IMG/VR virus record: IMGVR_UViG_3300025930_000007
Location: 202,491-266,490 of that record
Direction: 5' to 3' (one strand)
Length of the DNA stretch: 64,000 bases
This document shows, in pieces, positions 38,348-63,767 of this stretch; the stretch's first letter is position 1; each line of letters opens with the position of its first letter. The translations under genes were made by a program, and so were the position numbers. Under the pieces are notes generated by a model that searched no databases, was not told the DNA's origin, and worked only from the letters and a program-made list of their open reading frames with translations.

Positions 38348-38746
38348 TCAAGTGTGAAAGAAGTACTTCACGCCGGCGATCGCTCCTGGAAGGCTCGGCG
38401 TCGGGAGTTTCGAGGGCAAAAACCACCCGTAACGGTCGTGTTCATCGTTGAGGACCGGCTCCCAGGCATCCCCAGAAGCGTCCATTTGCGCCAGGAAGAG
38501 CGCAAAGGCGAAGAAGGGGTTCGGAGCCCACCATACGGGCTCTGTGTCGATATAGAGCTTCGGCAGGCCTCCAAGCTCCTCGCGTCCCTCCCGAAGGGCC
38601 GCCTCGAGGTGTGTCTCGCCTGGTTCAACACTGCCTCCCGTAAAATCCCAGTATCCCGGGCTGCTTTCTGCCGCGGATCTCCGCGTCATAAGAACCTTAC
38701 CGTCCCTGGGACGGAGGATCAGGAGACCCGCGCCATTTTCGCTCAT
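38348..38746 (-). CDS. NUDIX hydrolase
   Basis: GGSVEPGETHLEAALREGREELG Nudix box. Confidence 0.9.
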   Translation of the reverse strand: MSENGAGLLILRPRDGKVLMTRRSAAESSPGYWDFTGGSVEPGETHLEAALREGREELGGLPKLYIDTEPVWWAPNPFFAFALFLAQMDASGDAWEPVLNDEHDRYGWFLPSKLPTPSLPGAIAGVKYFFHT

Positions 38747-58822: not shown

Positions 58823-58851
58823 AGTATAGACCCGAGTATATAGGCTGTCAA
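58823..58851 (-). promoter_or_regulatory. near-consensus sigma70 promoter
   Basis: TTGACA-17-TATACT with AT-rich upstream tract. Confidence 0.8.
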
Positions 58852-58872: not shown

Positions 58873-58906
58873 AAAAAAGGCCTGAGCAGATTTCTCTGCC
58901 CAGGCC
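58873..58906 (-). terminator. Rho-independent terminator after vWA gene
   Basis: GGCCTGGGCAGA-GAAA-TCTGCTCAGGCC followed by TTTTTT. Confidence 0.85.
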
Positions 58907-58944
58907 CCCTGAGTATGCGCGAGCGACAGGCCCGCGACTGGGTA

Positions 58945-59739
58945 CTAGGGATTGCCGAAGCCTCCGAGAGCGGTCTTGGAGAAGCTGGCGGCGTTCTGGC
59001 TCGCGCGCACCGCGCTCTGGGAGAAGAGCTGGAAGGCCTTCCGGATCTCGGACGGCGTGGTCTTAGGGGTCAGGATCCACTCGTCGCGGAGGCCCATCTC
59101 CTTGAAGACCTGCTTGAAGTCCGTGCCGGCGCCGTCATCGAACCCCATGGCTGCGATGATGTGGTTCTCCTTCCGGAGCATGTCCTCCACGATCGCCTTC
59201 ACGTTCTTCGCGTGGCCCCTGGAACTCTCGTCCTTGCCGTCGGTCATGAGGAGCGTCACCGTGCGGACCGGGATGCCGTTGTCGGCGAACTCCTTGGTCT
59301 TGGCGAGCACGGTGCCGAGGCAGACGACCGCCTGGTCGTAGAGCGGCGTTCCCAGGTTGGGATCGTAGTTCTTGTCCGTCATCTTGACCGCATCGTCGAT
59401 CTTGACGTACGGATAGAGGACCGTCCCGTTCAGGAATCGATTGTGGATCAGGACGGAATCCTTCTGCTTGCTGGCCAGCAGGGCGTTCACGACTTCGTTG
59501 TGCCCGTCGCGGATCGCCTGGCTGTTTCCGCCGAAGCGGATCGAGCCGGAATCGTCCGGCATGAGCGTGACCAGCACGACCTCGGAGGACTGCACGTCCT
59601 CCGCACCGATCCCCAGGCCTGCCTGGATCTGGGCGCCGATGTCGATGTTGGTCAGGGCCTGCATGGAGGCGGCGGACAGGTCGCCTTCCTTGTGGGCTCC
59701 CTTCAGGAGCTCGTTCGCATTGGGGACTGTCTTGCTCAT
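58945..59739 (-). CDS. vWA domain protein (TerY-like)
   Basis: DDSGS MIDAS, TPLYD, LMTDG. Confidence 0.85.
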   Translation of the reverse strand: MSKTVPNANELLKGAHKEGDLSAASMQALTNIDIGAQIQAGLGIGAEDVQSSEVVLVTLMPDDSGSIRFGGNSQAIRDGHNEVVNALLASKQKDSVLIHNRFLNGTVLYPYVKIDDAVKMTDKNYDPNLGTPLYDQAVVCLGTVLAKTKEFADNGIPVRTVTLLMTDGKDESSRGHAKNVKAIVEDMLRKENHIIAAMGFDDGAGTDFKQVFKEMGLRDEWILTPKTTPSEIRKAFQLFSQSAVRASQNAASFSKTALGGFGNP

Positions 59740-59770
59740 GGGTTTCTCCTTCCTTCCTCAAATATCGATC

Positions 59771-60301
59771 TCAGTTCTTCACGGCATCCGCATCGACGAA
59801 CTCGAAGCGGTGCAACTTCTTCGTCCCTTCCGCGGGGACGACGTAGTAGACCTCCTTGTAGCGGATCTTGACGGAGTCGCCTTGCTTCAGCTTCTTCCAG
59901 AGGTTCCCGGCCCGGGAATCCCTCCCGAGATCTTCGATCAGGAACTTGCCGTGCTGGCACTCGAAGACCACGGCAAACTGATCCTCGACCTTGACGGTAT
60001 TGCTGCCTCGGATTGCCGGCACGGAGATCGTCTTGGTATGCATCCCCAGAGGATCATCCCAGCCGCTCTGCGCGATGGTCTTGACGTGTCCAGGCATTTC
60101 GCTGCTGGTCGTAACCGTAGATCCCAGGCGGAAGGCGATCTCGAGGACCTTCCCGCTTTCCGTTACCTCCGGTCCCGTCTCCTCATGGGGAGGCGGTGGT
60201 AACTCCGCGTTCTGGGGGCCGGACATCCGATATCGAGTCGGACGCGGCTCGTCGCACGAGACGGCCAGAAGCGCCAGGACCAGCACGATCGAGATCTTCA
60301 T
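59771..60301 (-). CDS. lipoprotein
   Basis: signal peptide with lipobox LAVSC. Confidence 0.7.
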   Translation of the reverse strand: MKISIVLVLALLAVSCDEPRPTRYRMSGPQNAELPPPPHEETGPEVTESGKVLEIAFRLGSTVTTSSEMPGHVKTIAQSGWDDPLGMHTKTISVPAIRGSNTVKVEDQFAVVFECQHGKFLIEDLGRDSRAGNLWKKLKQGDSVKIRYKEVYYVVPAEGTKKLHRFEFVDADAVKN

Positions 60302-60303
60302 GG

Positions 60304-61368
60304 TTACGCCGGGAAGCCTTCCCAGTCCTCCATGGGAGTCGTGGACTCGACGACGTGCATGCCGGCGTCGTCGAACAGCTTGAGGGCCTTCTCCGCCTGC
60401 GGGGTGAAGTCGGCCAGGAAGCCGCCCTTGCCGTCCGGAACGGCGACCGCGCTCATGCAGTCCTTGAGGACGTAGACCTTCTTGACGAGCTTCGGATCCT
60501 GGGCGTTGATCGTGTCGAGCAGATCCTTGATGGAGCTGGAGACGCAGTGGGAGGCTGCCTGGCCCGCAATCACGACTGCGTCGGAATCCAGCAACTTCTT
60601 AATGAAGGCCGTGTTCCGCTGCGCGAGGGGCTTCCCGTCATGCCGGGTCAGGACCTCCGGGGAGAGGACGCTGTAGTTCTCGGTCAGGAGATTGCCGCCC
60701 TTCACTTCGACGGCGTTGACGGACTTCCGGGTGAAGGCGTGGAAGATCCGGGCCTCCTCGATCACGCCGGAGAGGACGTGGCCGGTGGAGCCGATCAGGC
60801 AGTGATAGGGCCAGAGGTAGAGCATGTACTTCCCGGCCTTCTCGAGCTCCTCGCAGTAGAACCTCACCTGCTTGATCAGCCAGGGAAGGTTGCCGTCGCA
60901 GACGATCTGCGCGGCCGCCTTGGTGGGGCACACCTCGCCGGACTTGATCATCTCGCTCTTGATGACCGTATGGGCGCCCAGGGGCTTGCCGTCCTTGTCC
61001 TCCCAGAAGCTCGGGAAGAAGATCTGGAACGGGAAGTGGGTGTCCATGGTGCAGGTGATGTCCGAGATCCTGCCCAGGTTCCGGTAGATGAACTCCGCCA
61101 TCTTCCGGTTGTCCTCCATGGCGCCCTTGCCGCTGCGGCCGCCGACGTAGAGCGAGCCCTGGGGGAAGCAGAAGTCCTTCTGGACGTCGATCAGGAGCAG
61201 CTCGATCTTCTTGCCGTCGTGGCCCGAGGGCTTGATGTCGTGCTTCTTGATCCAGGACTCGGCCTGCCCGAAGAGGTCCGCGTGATTGGGCTCATAGGCC
61301 CAATCGTCGGCGTTCTTGGCCTTGAAGAACGTCGGAAGCGGAAGCTGCCGGATTGCCGTGGTGCTCAT
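60304..61368 (-). CDS. nicotinamidase/isochorismatase-family cysteine hydrolase
   Basis: LLIDVQKDF, DTH, WPYHC, KG, AGQAASHCV. Confidence 0.88.
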   Translation of the reverse strand: MSTTAIRQLPLPTFFKAKNADDWAYEPNHADLFGQAESWIKKHDIKPSGHDGKKIELLLIDVQKDFCFPQGSLYVGGRSGKGAMEDNRKMAEFIYRNLGRISDITCTMDTHFPFQIFFPSFWEDKDGKPLGAHTVIKSEMIKSGEVCPTKAAAQIVCDGNLPWLIKQVRFYCEELEKAGKYMLYLWPYHCLIGSTGHVLSGVIEEARIFHAFTRKSVNAVEVKGGNLLTENYSVLSPEVLTRHDGKPLAQRNTAFIKKLLDSDAVVIAGQAASHCVSSSIKDLLDTINAQDPKLVKKVYVLKDCMSAVAVPDGKGGFLADFTPQAEKALKLFDDAGMHVVESTTPMEDWEGFPA

Positions 61369-61409
61369 GCGTTTCTCCTTCCTATCCTTCTAAAATGAAG
61401 ACTGCCTAC

Positions 61410-61430
61410 TTAGTGTACTTATAACACTAA
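61410..61430. promoter_or_regulatory. 21-bp palindrome, NrtR-box-like (GT-N7-AC)
   Basis: TTAGTGT-ACTTATA-ACACTAA about 40 nt upstream of nicotinamidase ATG. Confidence 0.7.
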
Positions 61431-61453
61431 TTAACATCTAGAATATTCCGCGT

Positions 61454-61879
61454 TTACTTTCCTCCAGGTTTCACGTATTCCGCGCTCTGAACCATGTACC
61501 CGGAGTCCGTCTGGCAGCCGGGGCGGATCATCCATTCCTTGTACTTCACGATCACGGGCTTCTGGGTTCGCTGGGCTTCCTGGAGAAGCTTCAGACTGGT
61601 TTCATCTTCGTCCGGAATCGTGAAGTGCCAGACATTCGTTTCAAGATGTCCCTGAGAATTAGAAACCATCCCGCCCAGGTTCATCTCTCCTTCCCAAGTC
61701 TTGTTCTGCCAGCCCTTATGGCTGATCTTGGTGACGACCCCGACACGCTCGCCCTCGCTGTAGCTGTCGTTGCATCCGACCGGGCACCCTCGCGTACCGA
61801 AGCACAGAGCCAGGCAGATGCCCACGATCATGATCGTGTAGATGACCTCGAGCAGCGTGACTCCGCGATTCGTCCTCAT
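61454..61879 (-). CDS. membrane protein with prepilin-like N-terminus and phage lipoprotein-type domain
   Basis: RG|VTLLEV..; YSEGERVG...K.S.KG...KTWEGE. Confidence 0.7.
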   Translation of the reverse strand: MRTNRGVTLLEVIYTIMIVGICLALCFGTRGCPVGCNDSYSEGERVGVVTKISHKGWQNKTWEGEMNLGGMVSNSQGHLETNVWHFTIPDEDETSLKLLQEAQRTQKPVIVKYKEWMIRPGCQTDSGYMVQSAEYVKPGGK

Positions 61880-61883
61880 GGCA

Positions 61884-63767
61884 TCACCCCATCTTCAGGA
61901 CACGGATTTCGGAACGGTCTACGACATGCAAACCGTTCTTAGCGGGGAAGAGGTGGCATCCAGAATGTACGAAGGGTTCGGCGTCCGGATACTCGGCGGT
62001 CTTCTGAATCACCCCTCCAGCGACTTCTAAACGACAGAGGCCTTCGTCCGTGACCATGAACAGGTACTTTCCGAAAGCGCATTTCCCGCGAATTTCTCCG
62101 AGGATCCCGCCGGCATCCTCCTCGAGGTGTCCTTCGACTTGGCCGGCGCTGTCGATGACGGTGCAGCGCGTGACGATCTTCGGGCCCTGCTTCAGGGTCG
62201 CAAAGAACCAAACCCGATCCTTGGTGAAGAAGGTCGTGGAGTCCATGAGATGGCCGTGAAGGGGCGGCAATTTCACGGTGTCGTTCAGTCGGCCCTGGTT
62301 CACGTCGAAGACGAAGGCCATGGACAGGTTGGCTGCCCGGTAGAAGCCGAAACCGAAAGACTCGCCGACCCAGAAGAGCGTCTGGTTCTGCAGGACGTCT
62401 CCGATTCGCTCCGGGCCCGCGGGACGTTTCCGATAGAGGACGCCGTTCTCGCACCAGATGTAGAAGCTTTCGTTCGCATCGAAGACGGGCAGTTGCCCAT
62501 AGCGATCAACATTCAGGGTCGCATAGTCGGGATTGCCGTCCTCGGACACGATCCGGACCTGGTCGTCATTGCCGACCAGCGTGTAGTCGCCCATGATCCG
62601 ATACCGGGCCCGGAAGCCCGGGTCTTCCTTGAAGGCTACCGATCCGTCTTCACGCTTGAAGTCACGGCCTTCGCGGAATAGATAATTCAGGACCCCACTC
62701 TGGGAGACGGCGAAGAGGATCTCGCCCGAGGTCTTGAAAACGGCCGTCGAAGTCACCTTACCGCGCACTTTGACGGTCTCCTTGATGGCCGCCGGCGCCG
62801 CCTTCTGGCAGCTCGGGCACTTGGGGCGGGCATGCTCGGTGCCGCACCCGCTGCAGACGGTCCAGCGGATATTCATCAGAAGATGCTTCGAAATCTCGCG
62901 CTGCGGCCCTTCGAAGACGCTCTGGAACCAGTCGAGAAAGCTATCCGGAAGCCTATCGAACGGCACCGCGGGCTTCGGATAGATCACATCCTTGTGAAAA
63001 ACGCTGATCCGGTATCCAGGCAGCGGTCGCGCGGCATGCGGGATCTGCTTGTTCTTGTTGCTCGGCCTATAGATCCCTCCGAAAGGATCACAGAGCAGGA
63101 GCGACCGGAAAAGCATCACGTTATAGGCGTACCAGTCGGACGATTCCTTGTGGGGAAACTTGAGGATCGGCCGGGTCTCCTTCGGATCACAGTGGAGCGG
63201 ATCAACGAACCGCTCGGTGTACATCCGGCTGAGATATTTCCCGAACTGGAAGCTGTCGGCGTCGATGATGAAGGGATCTCCAGCCCAGTCGACCAGAATG
63301 TTCAGGTCGTTGAAGTCTCCGATCACGACTTTCCAGTTCTGATGCAGCCGATCGACCGTCTGCCAGAGCTTCTGGAAGATCTCGACGACCTTGTTGTTGT
63401 CTAGCGTGGCGCCGCGGAAGGACCGCTCGGACCAGCGCAGGAGAACCTCGGCCTTGGGCACGTACTCCATGGTGTACCCCAGGATGCGCTGCTCCGTGCG
63501 ATCCGTGACCAGGCTGATCGGCGCCTTCACGTTCAGGCCGGCGAGCTTGGGGAATTCCCGGAGTTTGGTCTGGTGCTCCAGGAGGCGCTGCCGCGCGCCT
63601 TCGGCCTCCTGGCTATTGTTCATGTAGTCCGGGTGATCCGGCTGCTTATAGATCTTCGCGACCGTCCGAGCGTCGATCTTGTAGACGTCCGCCTCGCCTC
63701 CCTTGCCCACGGACTGGGAGGGATCGAGCCGTATCCTCTTCCCGCTGATATAGACTTCCATGCTCAC
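61884..63767 (-). CDS. Ser/Thr-kinase-fold protein (TerY-associated type) with Zn ribbon and beta-rich C-terminus
   Basis: GKGGEADVY, AKIY, IGDFNDLNIL, IDADS, CxxC..CxxC. Confidence 0.85.
   Translation of the reverse strand: MSMEVYISGKRIRLDPSQSVGKGGEADVYKIDARTVAKIYKQPDHPDYMNNSQEAEGARQRLLEHQTKLREFPKLAGLNVKAPISLVTDRTEQRILGYTMEYVPKAEVLLRWSERSFRGATLDNNKVVEIFQKLWQTVDRLHQNWKVVIGDFNDLNILVDWAGDPFIIDADSFQFGKYLSRMYTERFVDPLHCDPKETRPILKFPHKESSDWYAYNVMLFRSLLLCDPFGGIYRPSNKNKQIPHAARPLPGYRISVFHKDVIYPKPAVPFDRLPDSFLDWFQSVFEGPQREISKHLLMNIRWTVCSGCGTEHARPKCPSCQKAAPAAIKETVKVRGKVTSTAVFKTSGEILFAVSQSGVLNYLFREGRDFKREDGSVAFKEDPGFRARYRIMGDYTLVGNDDQVRIVSEDGNPDYATLNVDRYGQLPVFDANESFYIWCENGVLYRKRPAGPERIGDVLQNQTLFWVGESFGFGFYRAANLSMAFVFDVNQGRLNDTVKLPPLHGHLMDSTTFFTKDRVWFFATLKQGPKIVTRCTVIDSAGQVEGHLEEDAGGILGEIRGKCAFGKYLFMVTDEGLCRLEVAGGVIQKTAEYPDAEPFVHSGCHLFPAKNGLHVVDRSEIRVLKMG

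Follow-up and report, generated by a model that had tools for sequence, protein, structure and literature searches.

The nicotinamidase locus

A 64,000-nucleotide (nt) stretch of jumbo-phage DNA from IMG/VR (IMGVR_UViG_3300025930_000007; hereafter the window), which is bases 89091-153090 of one 236,090-bp virus record in the genome coordinates used here (prefixed G000), carries a 21-bp palindrome ahead of a nicotinamidase-like gene. We asked how this element relates to the operators of NrtR, a repressor of bacterial nicotinamide adenine dinucleotide (NAD) salvage genes. The record has a GC content of 0.58, a CheckV completeness of 90% and is classed as linear; a 266-kb sister contig holds an identical copy of the operator locus, and the phage recurs across many rhizosphere and soil metagenomes. 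Runs labelled as metatranscriptomes gave only contigs of a variant, and no transcript ends were obtained from them. Almost every gene around the palindrome lies on the minus strand. The features of the locus, in window coordinates, are as follows.

58875-58910, minus strand: strong terminator-like hairpin (16 pairs and a T run), closing the nicotinamidase-lipoprotein-vWA unit
58945-59739, minus strand: 264-amino-acid (aa) vWA-like protein with DxSxS and TDG motifs, found after the nicotinamidase in phages and bacteria
59771-60301, minus strand: 176-aa lipoprotein
60304-61368, minus strand: 354-aa long-form nicotinamidase-like cysteine hydrolase, assigned by motifs and homologue names
61369-61453, minus strand: AT-rich intergenic gap of 85 nt, containing the operator
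61407-61429, minus strand: block invariant in five diverged relatives, on the gene strand TAGTGT-N6-T-ACACTAAGTA, with a variable spacer centre
61410-61430, no strand assigned: 21-bp NrtR-type operator TTAGTGT-N7-ACACTAA, in single copy, placed by matrix score and consensus match
61454-61879, minus strand: 141-aa protein with a prepilin-type N-terminal methylation motif, an indel among relatives
61884-63767, minus strand: 627-aa protein with an N-terminal protein-kinase-like domain, member of a conserved module

Judged by its motifs, the 354-aa product is a divergent long-form nicotinamidase-like protein with about 120 aa of insertions and a putative substrate. The Asp-Lys-Cys triad (D61, K223, C275) and the metal motifs (D109-x-H111 and WPYHC at 186-190, followed by H197) are invariant in 16 family sequences, and its LLIDVQKDF and WPYHC...H segments align with the Leishmania nicotinamidase 3r2j. 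Profile scores are below the respective cut-offs, both for Pfam Isochorismatase (E 5e-5, 23.9 bits; cut-off 27) and for NCBIfam nicotinamidase (19.7 bits; cut-off 174). The family comprises 4112 homologues of about 350 aa, named nicotinamidase by NCBI and JGI, and its closest bacterial members (60-66% identical) come from Myxococcota, Planctomycetota, Gemmatimonadota and Holophagales. The nicotinamidase named in the original prediction, a note made from the window's letters alone, is thus upheld as nicotinamidase-like by catalytic and metal motifs and by homologue names, though below the Pfam cut-off. The lipoprotein and the vWA protein named there were recovered as well, the former by a signal peptide and the lipobox LLAVSC, the latter by its vWA-type signature; because the 264-aa protein matches no Pfam family and no PDB profile, its assignment is made from motifs only. 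The lipoprotein gene is accessory, being placed elsewhere in one relative (L003).

A unique palindrome conserved among phage relatives

The window reads TTAGTGT ACTTATA ACACTAA at 61410-61430, a perfect 7-7-7 palindrome in an AT-rich gap, as had been claimed, with GT and AC bordering the 7-nt spacer. NrtR sites are defined by 21-bp palindromic symmetry and a GT-N7-AC core (PMC2330246), and the phage site has both. It lies between the stop of the 141-aa gene and the ATG of the 354-aa gene, 41 nt by coordinates from that start codon (the earlier estimate was about 40), and an AGGAG ribosome-binding site stands 7 nt upstream of the ATG. The gap is among only 31 AT-rich islands in the 236-kb genome, and the operator motif occurs nowhere else in that genome. 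Two other elements adjoin the site. A perfect 8-bp palindrome, GAATATTC, lies at 61441-61448, just past the upstream gene's stop and 10 nt from the operator, and is kept in four of five relatives, being missing in L003. The 9-mer TAACATCTA, immediately next to the operator at 61431-61439, recurs in a different operator-like set (G000:41964-42037 and 222223-222293), which has two adjacent TAACAT-N4-ATGTTA palindromes and, elsewhere, three TGTTAG direct repeats.

Two other identities were considered and rejected. A repeated phage promoter or operator does not agree with a motif that is unique in the genome, and the phage's own recurrent AT-rich motifs differ from it. A T7-type promoter was suggested by the resemblance of the invariant 23-bp block to T3, SP6 and K11 promoters, and the tandem arrays of the motif found elsewhere (see below) do not fit a promoter; a search of the genome for a single-subunit RNA polymerase (PF00940) gave no match, a weak test in which the controls were negative too. 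A literature search with strings of the motif sequence returned primers only.

Site and gap are both kept in contigs whose proteins are 81-99% identical to those of the window (L174, L181, L006, L182 and L003-L005). In the alignment of the five diverged relatives (A3; window/L174, L181, L006, L182 and L003), both half-sites and four bases beyond them are invariant (17 of 23 positions), while variation is seen in the six central bases, in the upstream flank and over much of the leader. Each site-bearing relative has exactly one strong site, at 23.8-26.0 bits on the bacterial matrix described below, its next best scoring less than 4 bits. The 141-aa gene is present in the window, L003, L006 and L181, and absent from L182 and from the contigs of P0009 and P0012; since L182 lacks the gene yet keeps gap and site, the two are independent. 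Relatives at 72-76% identity (L007, L173, L008, L180) are without the site and, where the kinase end is covered, their kinase gene ends 17-29 nt before the nicotinamidase start. A maximum-likelihood tree places the site-bearing clade (support 100/99) in the midst of phage copies that have no site, so that one gain is more parsimonious than three or more losses, and a site gained and then frozen argues for selection. The phage clade as a whole stands beside the Planctomycetota/Gemmatimonadota/Holophagales group, with weak support (81/66).

The bacterial regulon

Orthologue-encoding loci were collected from species-representative genomes (80 loci, L085-L164), and the 75 treated as bacterial, which amount to 764 kb at GC 0.63-0.76, were searched for GTGT-N7-ACAC with six flank positions left free. 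The search returned 165 sites against about 6 expected at that GC, every one of them upstream of the orthologue and none within 5 kb downstream of it; 56 stand no farther than 250 nt from the orthologue, and the others cluster at a distance of 2.5-4.8 kb, at operon starts or at nrtR. Counted by locus, 28 have a site within 200 nt of the orthologue and 64 within 5 kb. The free flank positions proved to be T/A, T and not-T on the left side, mirrored on the other, which gives the consensus WTVGTGT-N7-ACACBAW, and the phage site agrees with it at every informative position. On a symmetric matrix built from 152 distinct bacterial sites and scored over about 236,000 phage-genome positions, the phage site reaches 25.7 bits (91st percentile of the bacterial sites), the next best position of the genome 5.7 bits; the poor match to NrtR matrices that the original prediction had named as telling against it was thus not what we found. 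Many bacterial sites are imperfect palindromes (e.g. ATGGTGT...GACACTAT). Two Planctomycetota loci (L095, L089) have a tandem pair of which the first site takes up the spacer that separates a -35 (TTGACA or TTGCGT) from a -10 (TATGCT or TATATT) element, the classic position of a repressor.

The same loci connect the motif with the gene of the repressor. Altogether, 35 loci (34 of which belong to the 75 bacterial ones) have nrtR no more than 5 kb from the nicotinamidase gene; sites stand at the nrtR start, and tandem sites 22-23 bp apart follow nrtR. The NrtR_WHD domain (Pfam) was found in each of the five module-bearing bacterial genomes that were tested, and one bacterial NrtR matches the NCBIfam model 'ADPR responsive transcriptional repressor' at E 7.6e-55, with its Nudix box intact. 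One Planctomycetota genome has nrtR and the module on separate contigs, and there the start of nrtR bears a site of 19.3 bits; a second off-contig nrtR (L165) showed no site within the 1 kb read. To judge from these sequences, the pattern of motif and nrtR is the standard signature of an autoregulated repressor regulon, and by its letters the phage site cannot be told apart from those found ahead of the orthologue and of nrtR in Myxococcota, Planctomycetota, Gemmatimonadota and Holophagales.

What lies behind these sites, of which there are one or two, in bacteria is a conserved four-gene module, often neighboured by an autoregulated nrtR gene (Nudix and winged helix) and made up of a PP2C phosphatase, a 590-690-aa kinase-like protein, the 350-aa nicotinamidase-like protein and the 264-aa vWA-like protein. 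Its order is PP2C-kinase-nicotinamidase-264aa in Myxococcota and nicotinamidase-264aa-PP2C-kinase in Planctomycetota, Gemmatimonadota and Holophagales. An NrtR regulon that controls this module is thereby newly defined in the four groups. The phage carries all four genes (window 58945-63767 and G000:153945-154775). The regulated unit had originally been described as nicotinamidase, lipoprotein and vWA; these genes are indeed present, but they are part of the larger module conserved in bacteria.

The phage itself appears to lack the repressor. NrtR_WHD (PF21906) has no match in the 236-kb record (90% complete) or in the 266-kb sister contig, and a phage-encoded winged helix-turn-helix (wHTH) protein was looked for by tblastn with six bacterial NrtRs, whose one match (E 0.075), antisense inside a 352-aa gene, was dismissed as chance. 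The following gene is the only Nudix gene of the genome.

38348-38746, minus strand: 132-aa MutT-like Nudix hydrolase, without a wHTH and not an NrtR

The statement that the window has no NrtR gene and that its 132-aa Nudix protein has no wHTH can thus be extended to the whole genome, at least as regards NrtR_WHD. The absence of NrtR from virus and host alike, which had been put forward as counter-evidence, is borne out for the virus, in which none was found; the five bacterial genomes with the module that were tested all have NrtR. Since the phage has no nrtR, binding would have to be by a host protein. Some distant carriers of the module do have an NrtR-like gene of their own, namely L176:1-600 (a 360,807-bp metagenome contig), L163 (2530-2575, 7006-7671) and L145:3432-4085, and tandem sites precede the PP2C gene in L176 and L163. 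L176 is either a very large phage or a bacterial fragment; if a phage, its NrtR would be phage-encoded.

The same motif in arrays of small phages

IMG/VR was also scanned for the invariant 23-bp pattern, which yielded 75 viral loci, some of them probably chance single matches inside genes. At least 25 are tandem arrays of two to seven copies with a period of 22-25 bp, in long non-coding regions of unrelated small phages (examples are L083:738-900, L033:12335-12432, L048:948-1102, L037:9082-9275, L062:2000-2090, L076:145-330 and L021:5568-5708). The array motif is TTAGTGTM-N5-KACACTAAG, and its sites score 20-27 bits on the bacterial matrix. The arrays are often upstream of terS, terL or portal genes or beside GP88-family genes, near other iterons and AT-rich stretches. 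By terminase similarity one array group is near Flavobacteriia phages. BLAST of one array against cultured phages gave nothing useful, and Croceibacter phage P2559Y, the nearest cultured relative, carries another palindrome in that position. A regulator encoded beside the motif was sought by all-against-all clustering of the proteins around the 75 viral loci, and one shared between the jumbo phage and the array loci by protein comparison; neither revealed a shared DNA-binding family. Among the array-type records, NrtR_WHD was found in none of 50 and a Nudix domain in none of 33.

An NrtR-family operator probably under host control

The identification of the palindrome as an NrtR-family operator, the same cis-element that bacteria use for this gene, is well supported at the level of sequence. 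The NrtR-type operator upstream of the nicotinamidase that the original prediction proposed is backed by the family definition, by the core it shares with the operators of BtAraR (see below) and by the bacterial regulon motif with its linkage to nrtR. The phage, without an NrtR of its own, probably lets a host repressor control its NAD-salvage gene. Overall, we put at roughly 0.72 the probability that this is a genuine NrtR-family operator through which a host NrtR controls the phage nicotinamidase unit, ADP-ribose being the presumed effector.

On this account, an NrtR dimer supplied by the host would occupy the single site and lower expression of the unit that runs from the nicotinamidase through the lipoprotein and vWA genes to the terminator at 58875-58910, and would depart once its Nudix domain binds the effector. 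If the analogy with two NrtRs studied in vitro holds, this effector would be ADP-ribose, a product of NAD cleavage, and nicotinamide salvage would be switched on during NAD breakdown. The consensus is common to four phyla, which makes the proposal independent of which of them is the host, provided that the host has an NrtR of this clade. The ADP-ribose-sensing counter-defence envisaged originally, in which SIR2/TIR NADases would induce the unit, is a reasonable but speculative extension by analogy, and a link to NADase defences is plausible given that phages reconstitute NAD (PMC13464706).

Several observations weigh against this account. The trans-acting factor is an assumed host NrtR, no nrtR having been found in the phage or its sister contig. 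Bacteria usually have two sites in tandem, and the phage has only one. No conserved sigma-70 promoter (-35/-10) could be placed in the gap, an extended -10 (TGTTATAAG) within the spacer being present in the window and L181 only; accordingly, occlusion of a promoter and a block to read-through from the kinase operon are both possible. The effectors of the family comprise ADP-ribose, NAD and arabinose, so the ligand for this clade is a matter of analogy. The more basal relatives (L008, L180, L007/L173 and L126) lack the site, from which it follows that the control is evidently dispensable. Finally, the same motif occurs in small-phage arrays whose records, as far as searched, have neither NrtR nor Nudix genes.

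This last point bears most directly on the idea that the site is the operator of a DNA-binding protein other than NrtR, from phage or host, with the same specificity and not of a shared regulator. We consider this improbable: the jumbo phage and the array loci have no protein family in common, nor do the array loci among themselves, the bacterial motif tracks nrtR, even to the upstream region of an nrtR on a separate contig, and the arrays could themselves be sites for host NrtR-family proteins, as BtAraR binds tandem sites 24 bp apart. About equally unlikely is that the operator is a silent relic, brought in with bacterial DNA or through recombination with a further mobile copy of the module and without a role in infection. 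A relic would explain why the module as a whole is so clearly bacterial in type, why nrtR is missing from the phage and why close relatives manage without the site; yet both half-sites stayed invariant in five lineages while the six central bases and flanks changed and the neighbouring 141-aa gene was gained or lost over the same period, and the position of the site-bearing clade on the tree favours a single gain.

Less probable still is a role in RNA, in which the palindrome would form a transcript hairpin (for processing, attenuation or stabilization) after the kinase operon and ahead of the nicotinamidase. A conserved hairpin, too, would show up as a stem (here of 7 bp) around a loop (of 7 nt) that varies, and the fold includes this one; however, the gap is unexceptional in its folding energy (z = -0.84, matched by 40 of 200 shuffles), there is neither a U run nor an Rfam family, and many of the homologous bacterial sites are imperfect palindromes placed like DNA operators, in tandem within promoter regions and ahead of nrtR. 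Least credible of all, and effectively refuted, is a chance palindrome in an AT-rich spacer. Symmetry of this sort is in itself not rare, with 34 perfect 7-N7-7 palindromes in the genome (13 in the window) and at least one match with up to three mismatches in 20 of 100 shuffles; chance would still have to account for conservation in relatives, a 25.7-bit score unique in the genome and identity with the regulon motif ahead of the orthologue in four phyla.

Host control of the phage nicotinamidase unit through NrtR may be one case of something broader, in which phages use host NrtR as a sensor of NAD breakdown, the nicotinamidase arm of the jumbo phage's captured module being inducible, through a gained operator, by the ADP-ribose that arises when NADase defences are at work, and the small-phage arrays being host NrtR-family sites too. 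We regard this generalization as doubtful, if less so than the rivals above; were it true, NAD/ADP-ribose status would be a widespread input to phage gene control, with arrays by packaging or early regions. A major line of bacterial defence is the depletion of NAD by SIR2, TIR and related enzymes, and the narrower proposal for the jumbo phage, if true, would provide a concrete case of a virus tying its counter-measure to the very sensor with which the host registers NAD cleavage. The matrix of bacterial sites can also be used to seek NrtR-type sites in other viruses.

Other genes of the module and neighbouring elements

Two further phage genes belong to the same setting and lie outside the window.

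64855-65685 in extended window coordinates (G000:153945-154775), just past the window end: PP2C gene of the module
71538-72992 in extended window coordinates (G000:160628-162082), minus strand: 484-aa PncB-like nicotinate phosphoribosyltransferase (TIGR01513, E 2.4e-29)

It had been proposed to look for pncB elsewhere in the genome, and the PncB-like gene answers to this; no NrtR-type site is near it. In relatives L007 and L173 a PncB-like homologue is directly upstream of the module's PP2C gene. The combination of vWA, PP2C and kinase genes recalls what is reportedly the 'TerY-phosphorylation triad' of Anantharaman, Iyer and Aravind. The four-gene module may also be related, as we presume, to nrtX-nrtY, two unnamed genes under NrtR control in Rodionov et al. 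2008.

Five of the collected loci, L126 and L127 (about 106 kb, binned as Woesearchaeota), L164 (Parcubacteria), and L145 and L163 (Elusimicrobia), have a phage-style layout in which the kinase runs straight into the nicotinamidase, and in the tree L126 groups with the clade of the phage; all five have the look of phage or otherwise foreign contigs that were binned wrongly. Directly after the terminator that closes the nicotinamidase unit there is a promoter-like TTGACA-17-TATACT at 58851-58823. It belongs to recurrent promoter-like elements in AT-rich islands, with TTGACA followed by TATATACTC or GAGTATATACT (window 58823-58851; G000:40466-40535, 177912-177994 and 185457-185503).

Comparison with known systems

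The closest counterparts are the NrtR operators of bacterial NAD regulons. These lie between promoter and start codon and bind a repressor that is released by an NAD-derived ligand; ADP-ribose released the two NAD-regulon NrtRs tested in vitro, and pncA belongs to many NrtR regulons, that of a planctomycete included (PMC2330246). Regulation of pncA/pncB by NrtR was described in Pseudomonas, Clostridium, Roseiflexus and Blastopirellula marina (Rodionov et al. 2008, PMC2330246). The phage site resembles these operators in being a 21-bp GT-N7-AC palindrome upstream of the start of a nicotinamide-salvage gene, and in the bacterial loci the motif also precedes nrtR. It differs from them in residing on a virus without nrtR, as a single site instead of a tandem pair, and its gene is a 350-aa long-form nicotinamidase in a PP2C/kinase/vWA module instead of a classical pncA-pncB pair. 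Myxococcota, Gemmatimonadota and Holophagales were outside the 2008 survey.

A second relative is BtAraR of Bacteroides thetaiotaomicron, an NrtR-family protein whose operators GAGTGT-N7-ACACCA, AAGTGT-N7-ACACCC and AAGTGT-N7-ACACTT are known from electrophoretic mobility shift assays and a crystal structure (Chang et al. 2015, PMC4666351). They are 21 bp long, tandem copies being 3 bp apart (24-bp period), and effectors differ within the family, being ADP-ribose, NAD or arabinose (PMC4666351). The phage site and the operators of this arabinose-responsive member have an identical core, AGTGT-N7-ACAC. BtAraR differs in its effector (L-arabinose), in its sugar-catabolism regulon and in the outer positions of its sites, AAGTGT...ACACTT/CC as against TTAGTGT...ACACTAA in the phage.

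Boxes for host regulators on phage metabolic genes have precedents in cyanophages, with PhoB boxes before pstS and phoA and with NtcA sites. The likeness, as we propose it, is that a phage metabolic gene carries the operator of a host regulator and would be expressed according to the metabolic state of the host; the regulator and the signal are different, the latter here presumably a product of NAD breakdown. A non-exhaustive literature search turned up no previous description of a phage-borne NrtR site.

Phages are known to rebuild NAD by the pathways NARP1, NARP2 and NARP3, defined by the pairs Adps and Namat, Nampt and Nmnat, and PnuC and NadR-like, respectively, for which no regulation by a host sensor was described (PMC13464706). 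None of these pairs was recognized in our phage, in which neither an NMNAT / CTP_transf_like domain, as present in Nmnat and NadR-like enzymes, nor a Prs-like N domain was found, PnuC itself not having been searched for; its one NAPRTase-family gene resembles PncB. Like NARP1-3, the phage has NAD-salvage enzymes plausibly useful upon NAD depletion; unlike them, these are a PncA-like amidase and a PncB-like phosphoribosyltransferase, that is, the Preiss-Handler entry. The phage site represents a familiar type of element in an unfamiliar setting, namely a host-repressor operator placed on the NAD-salvage gene of a phage that does without the repressor.

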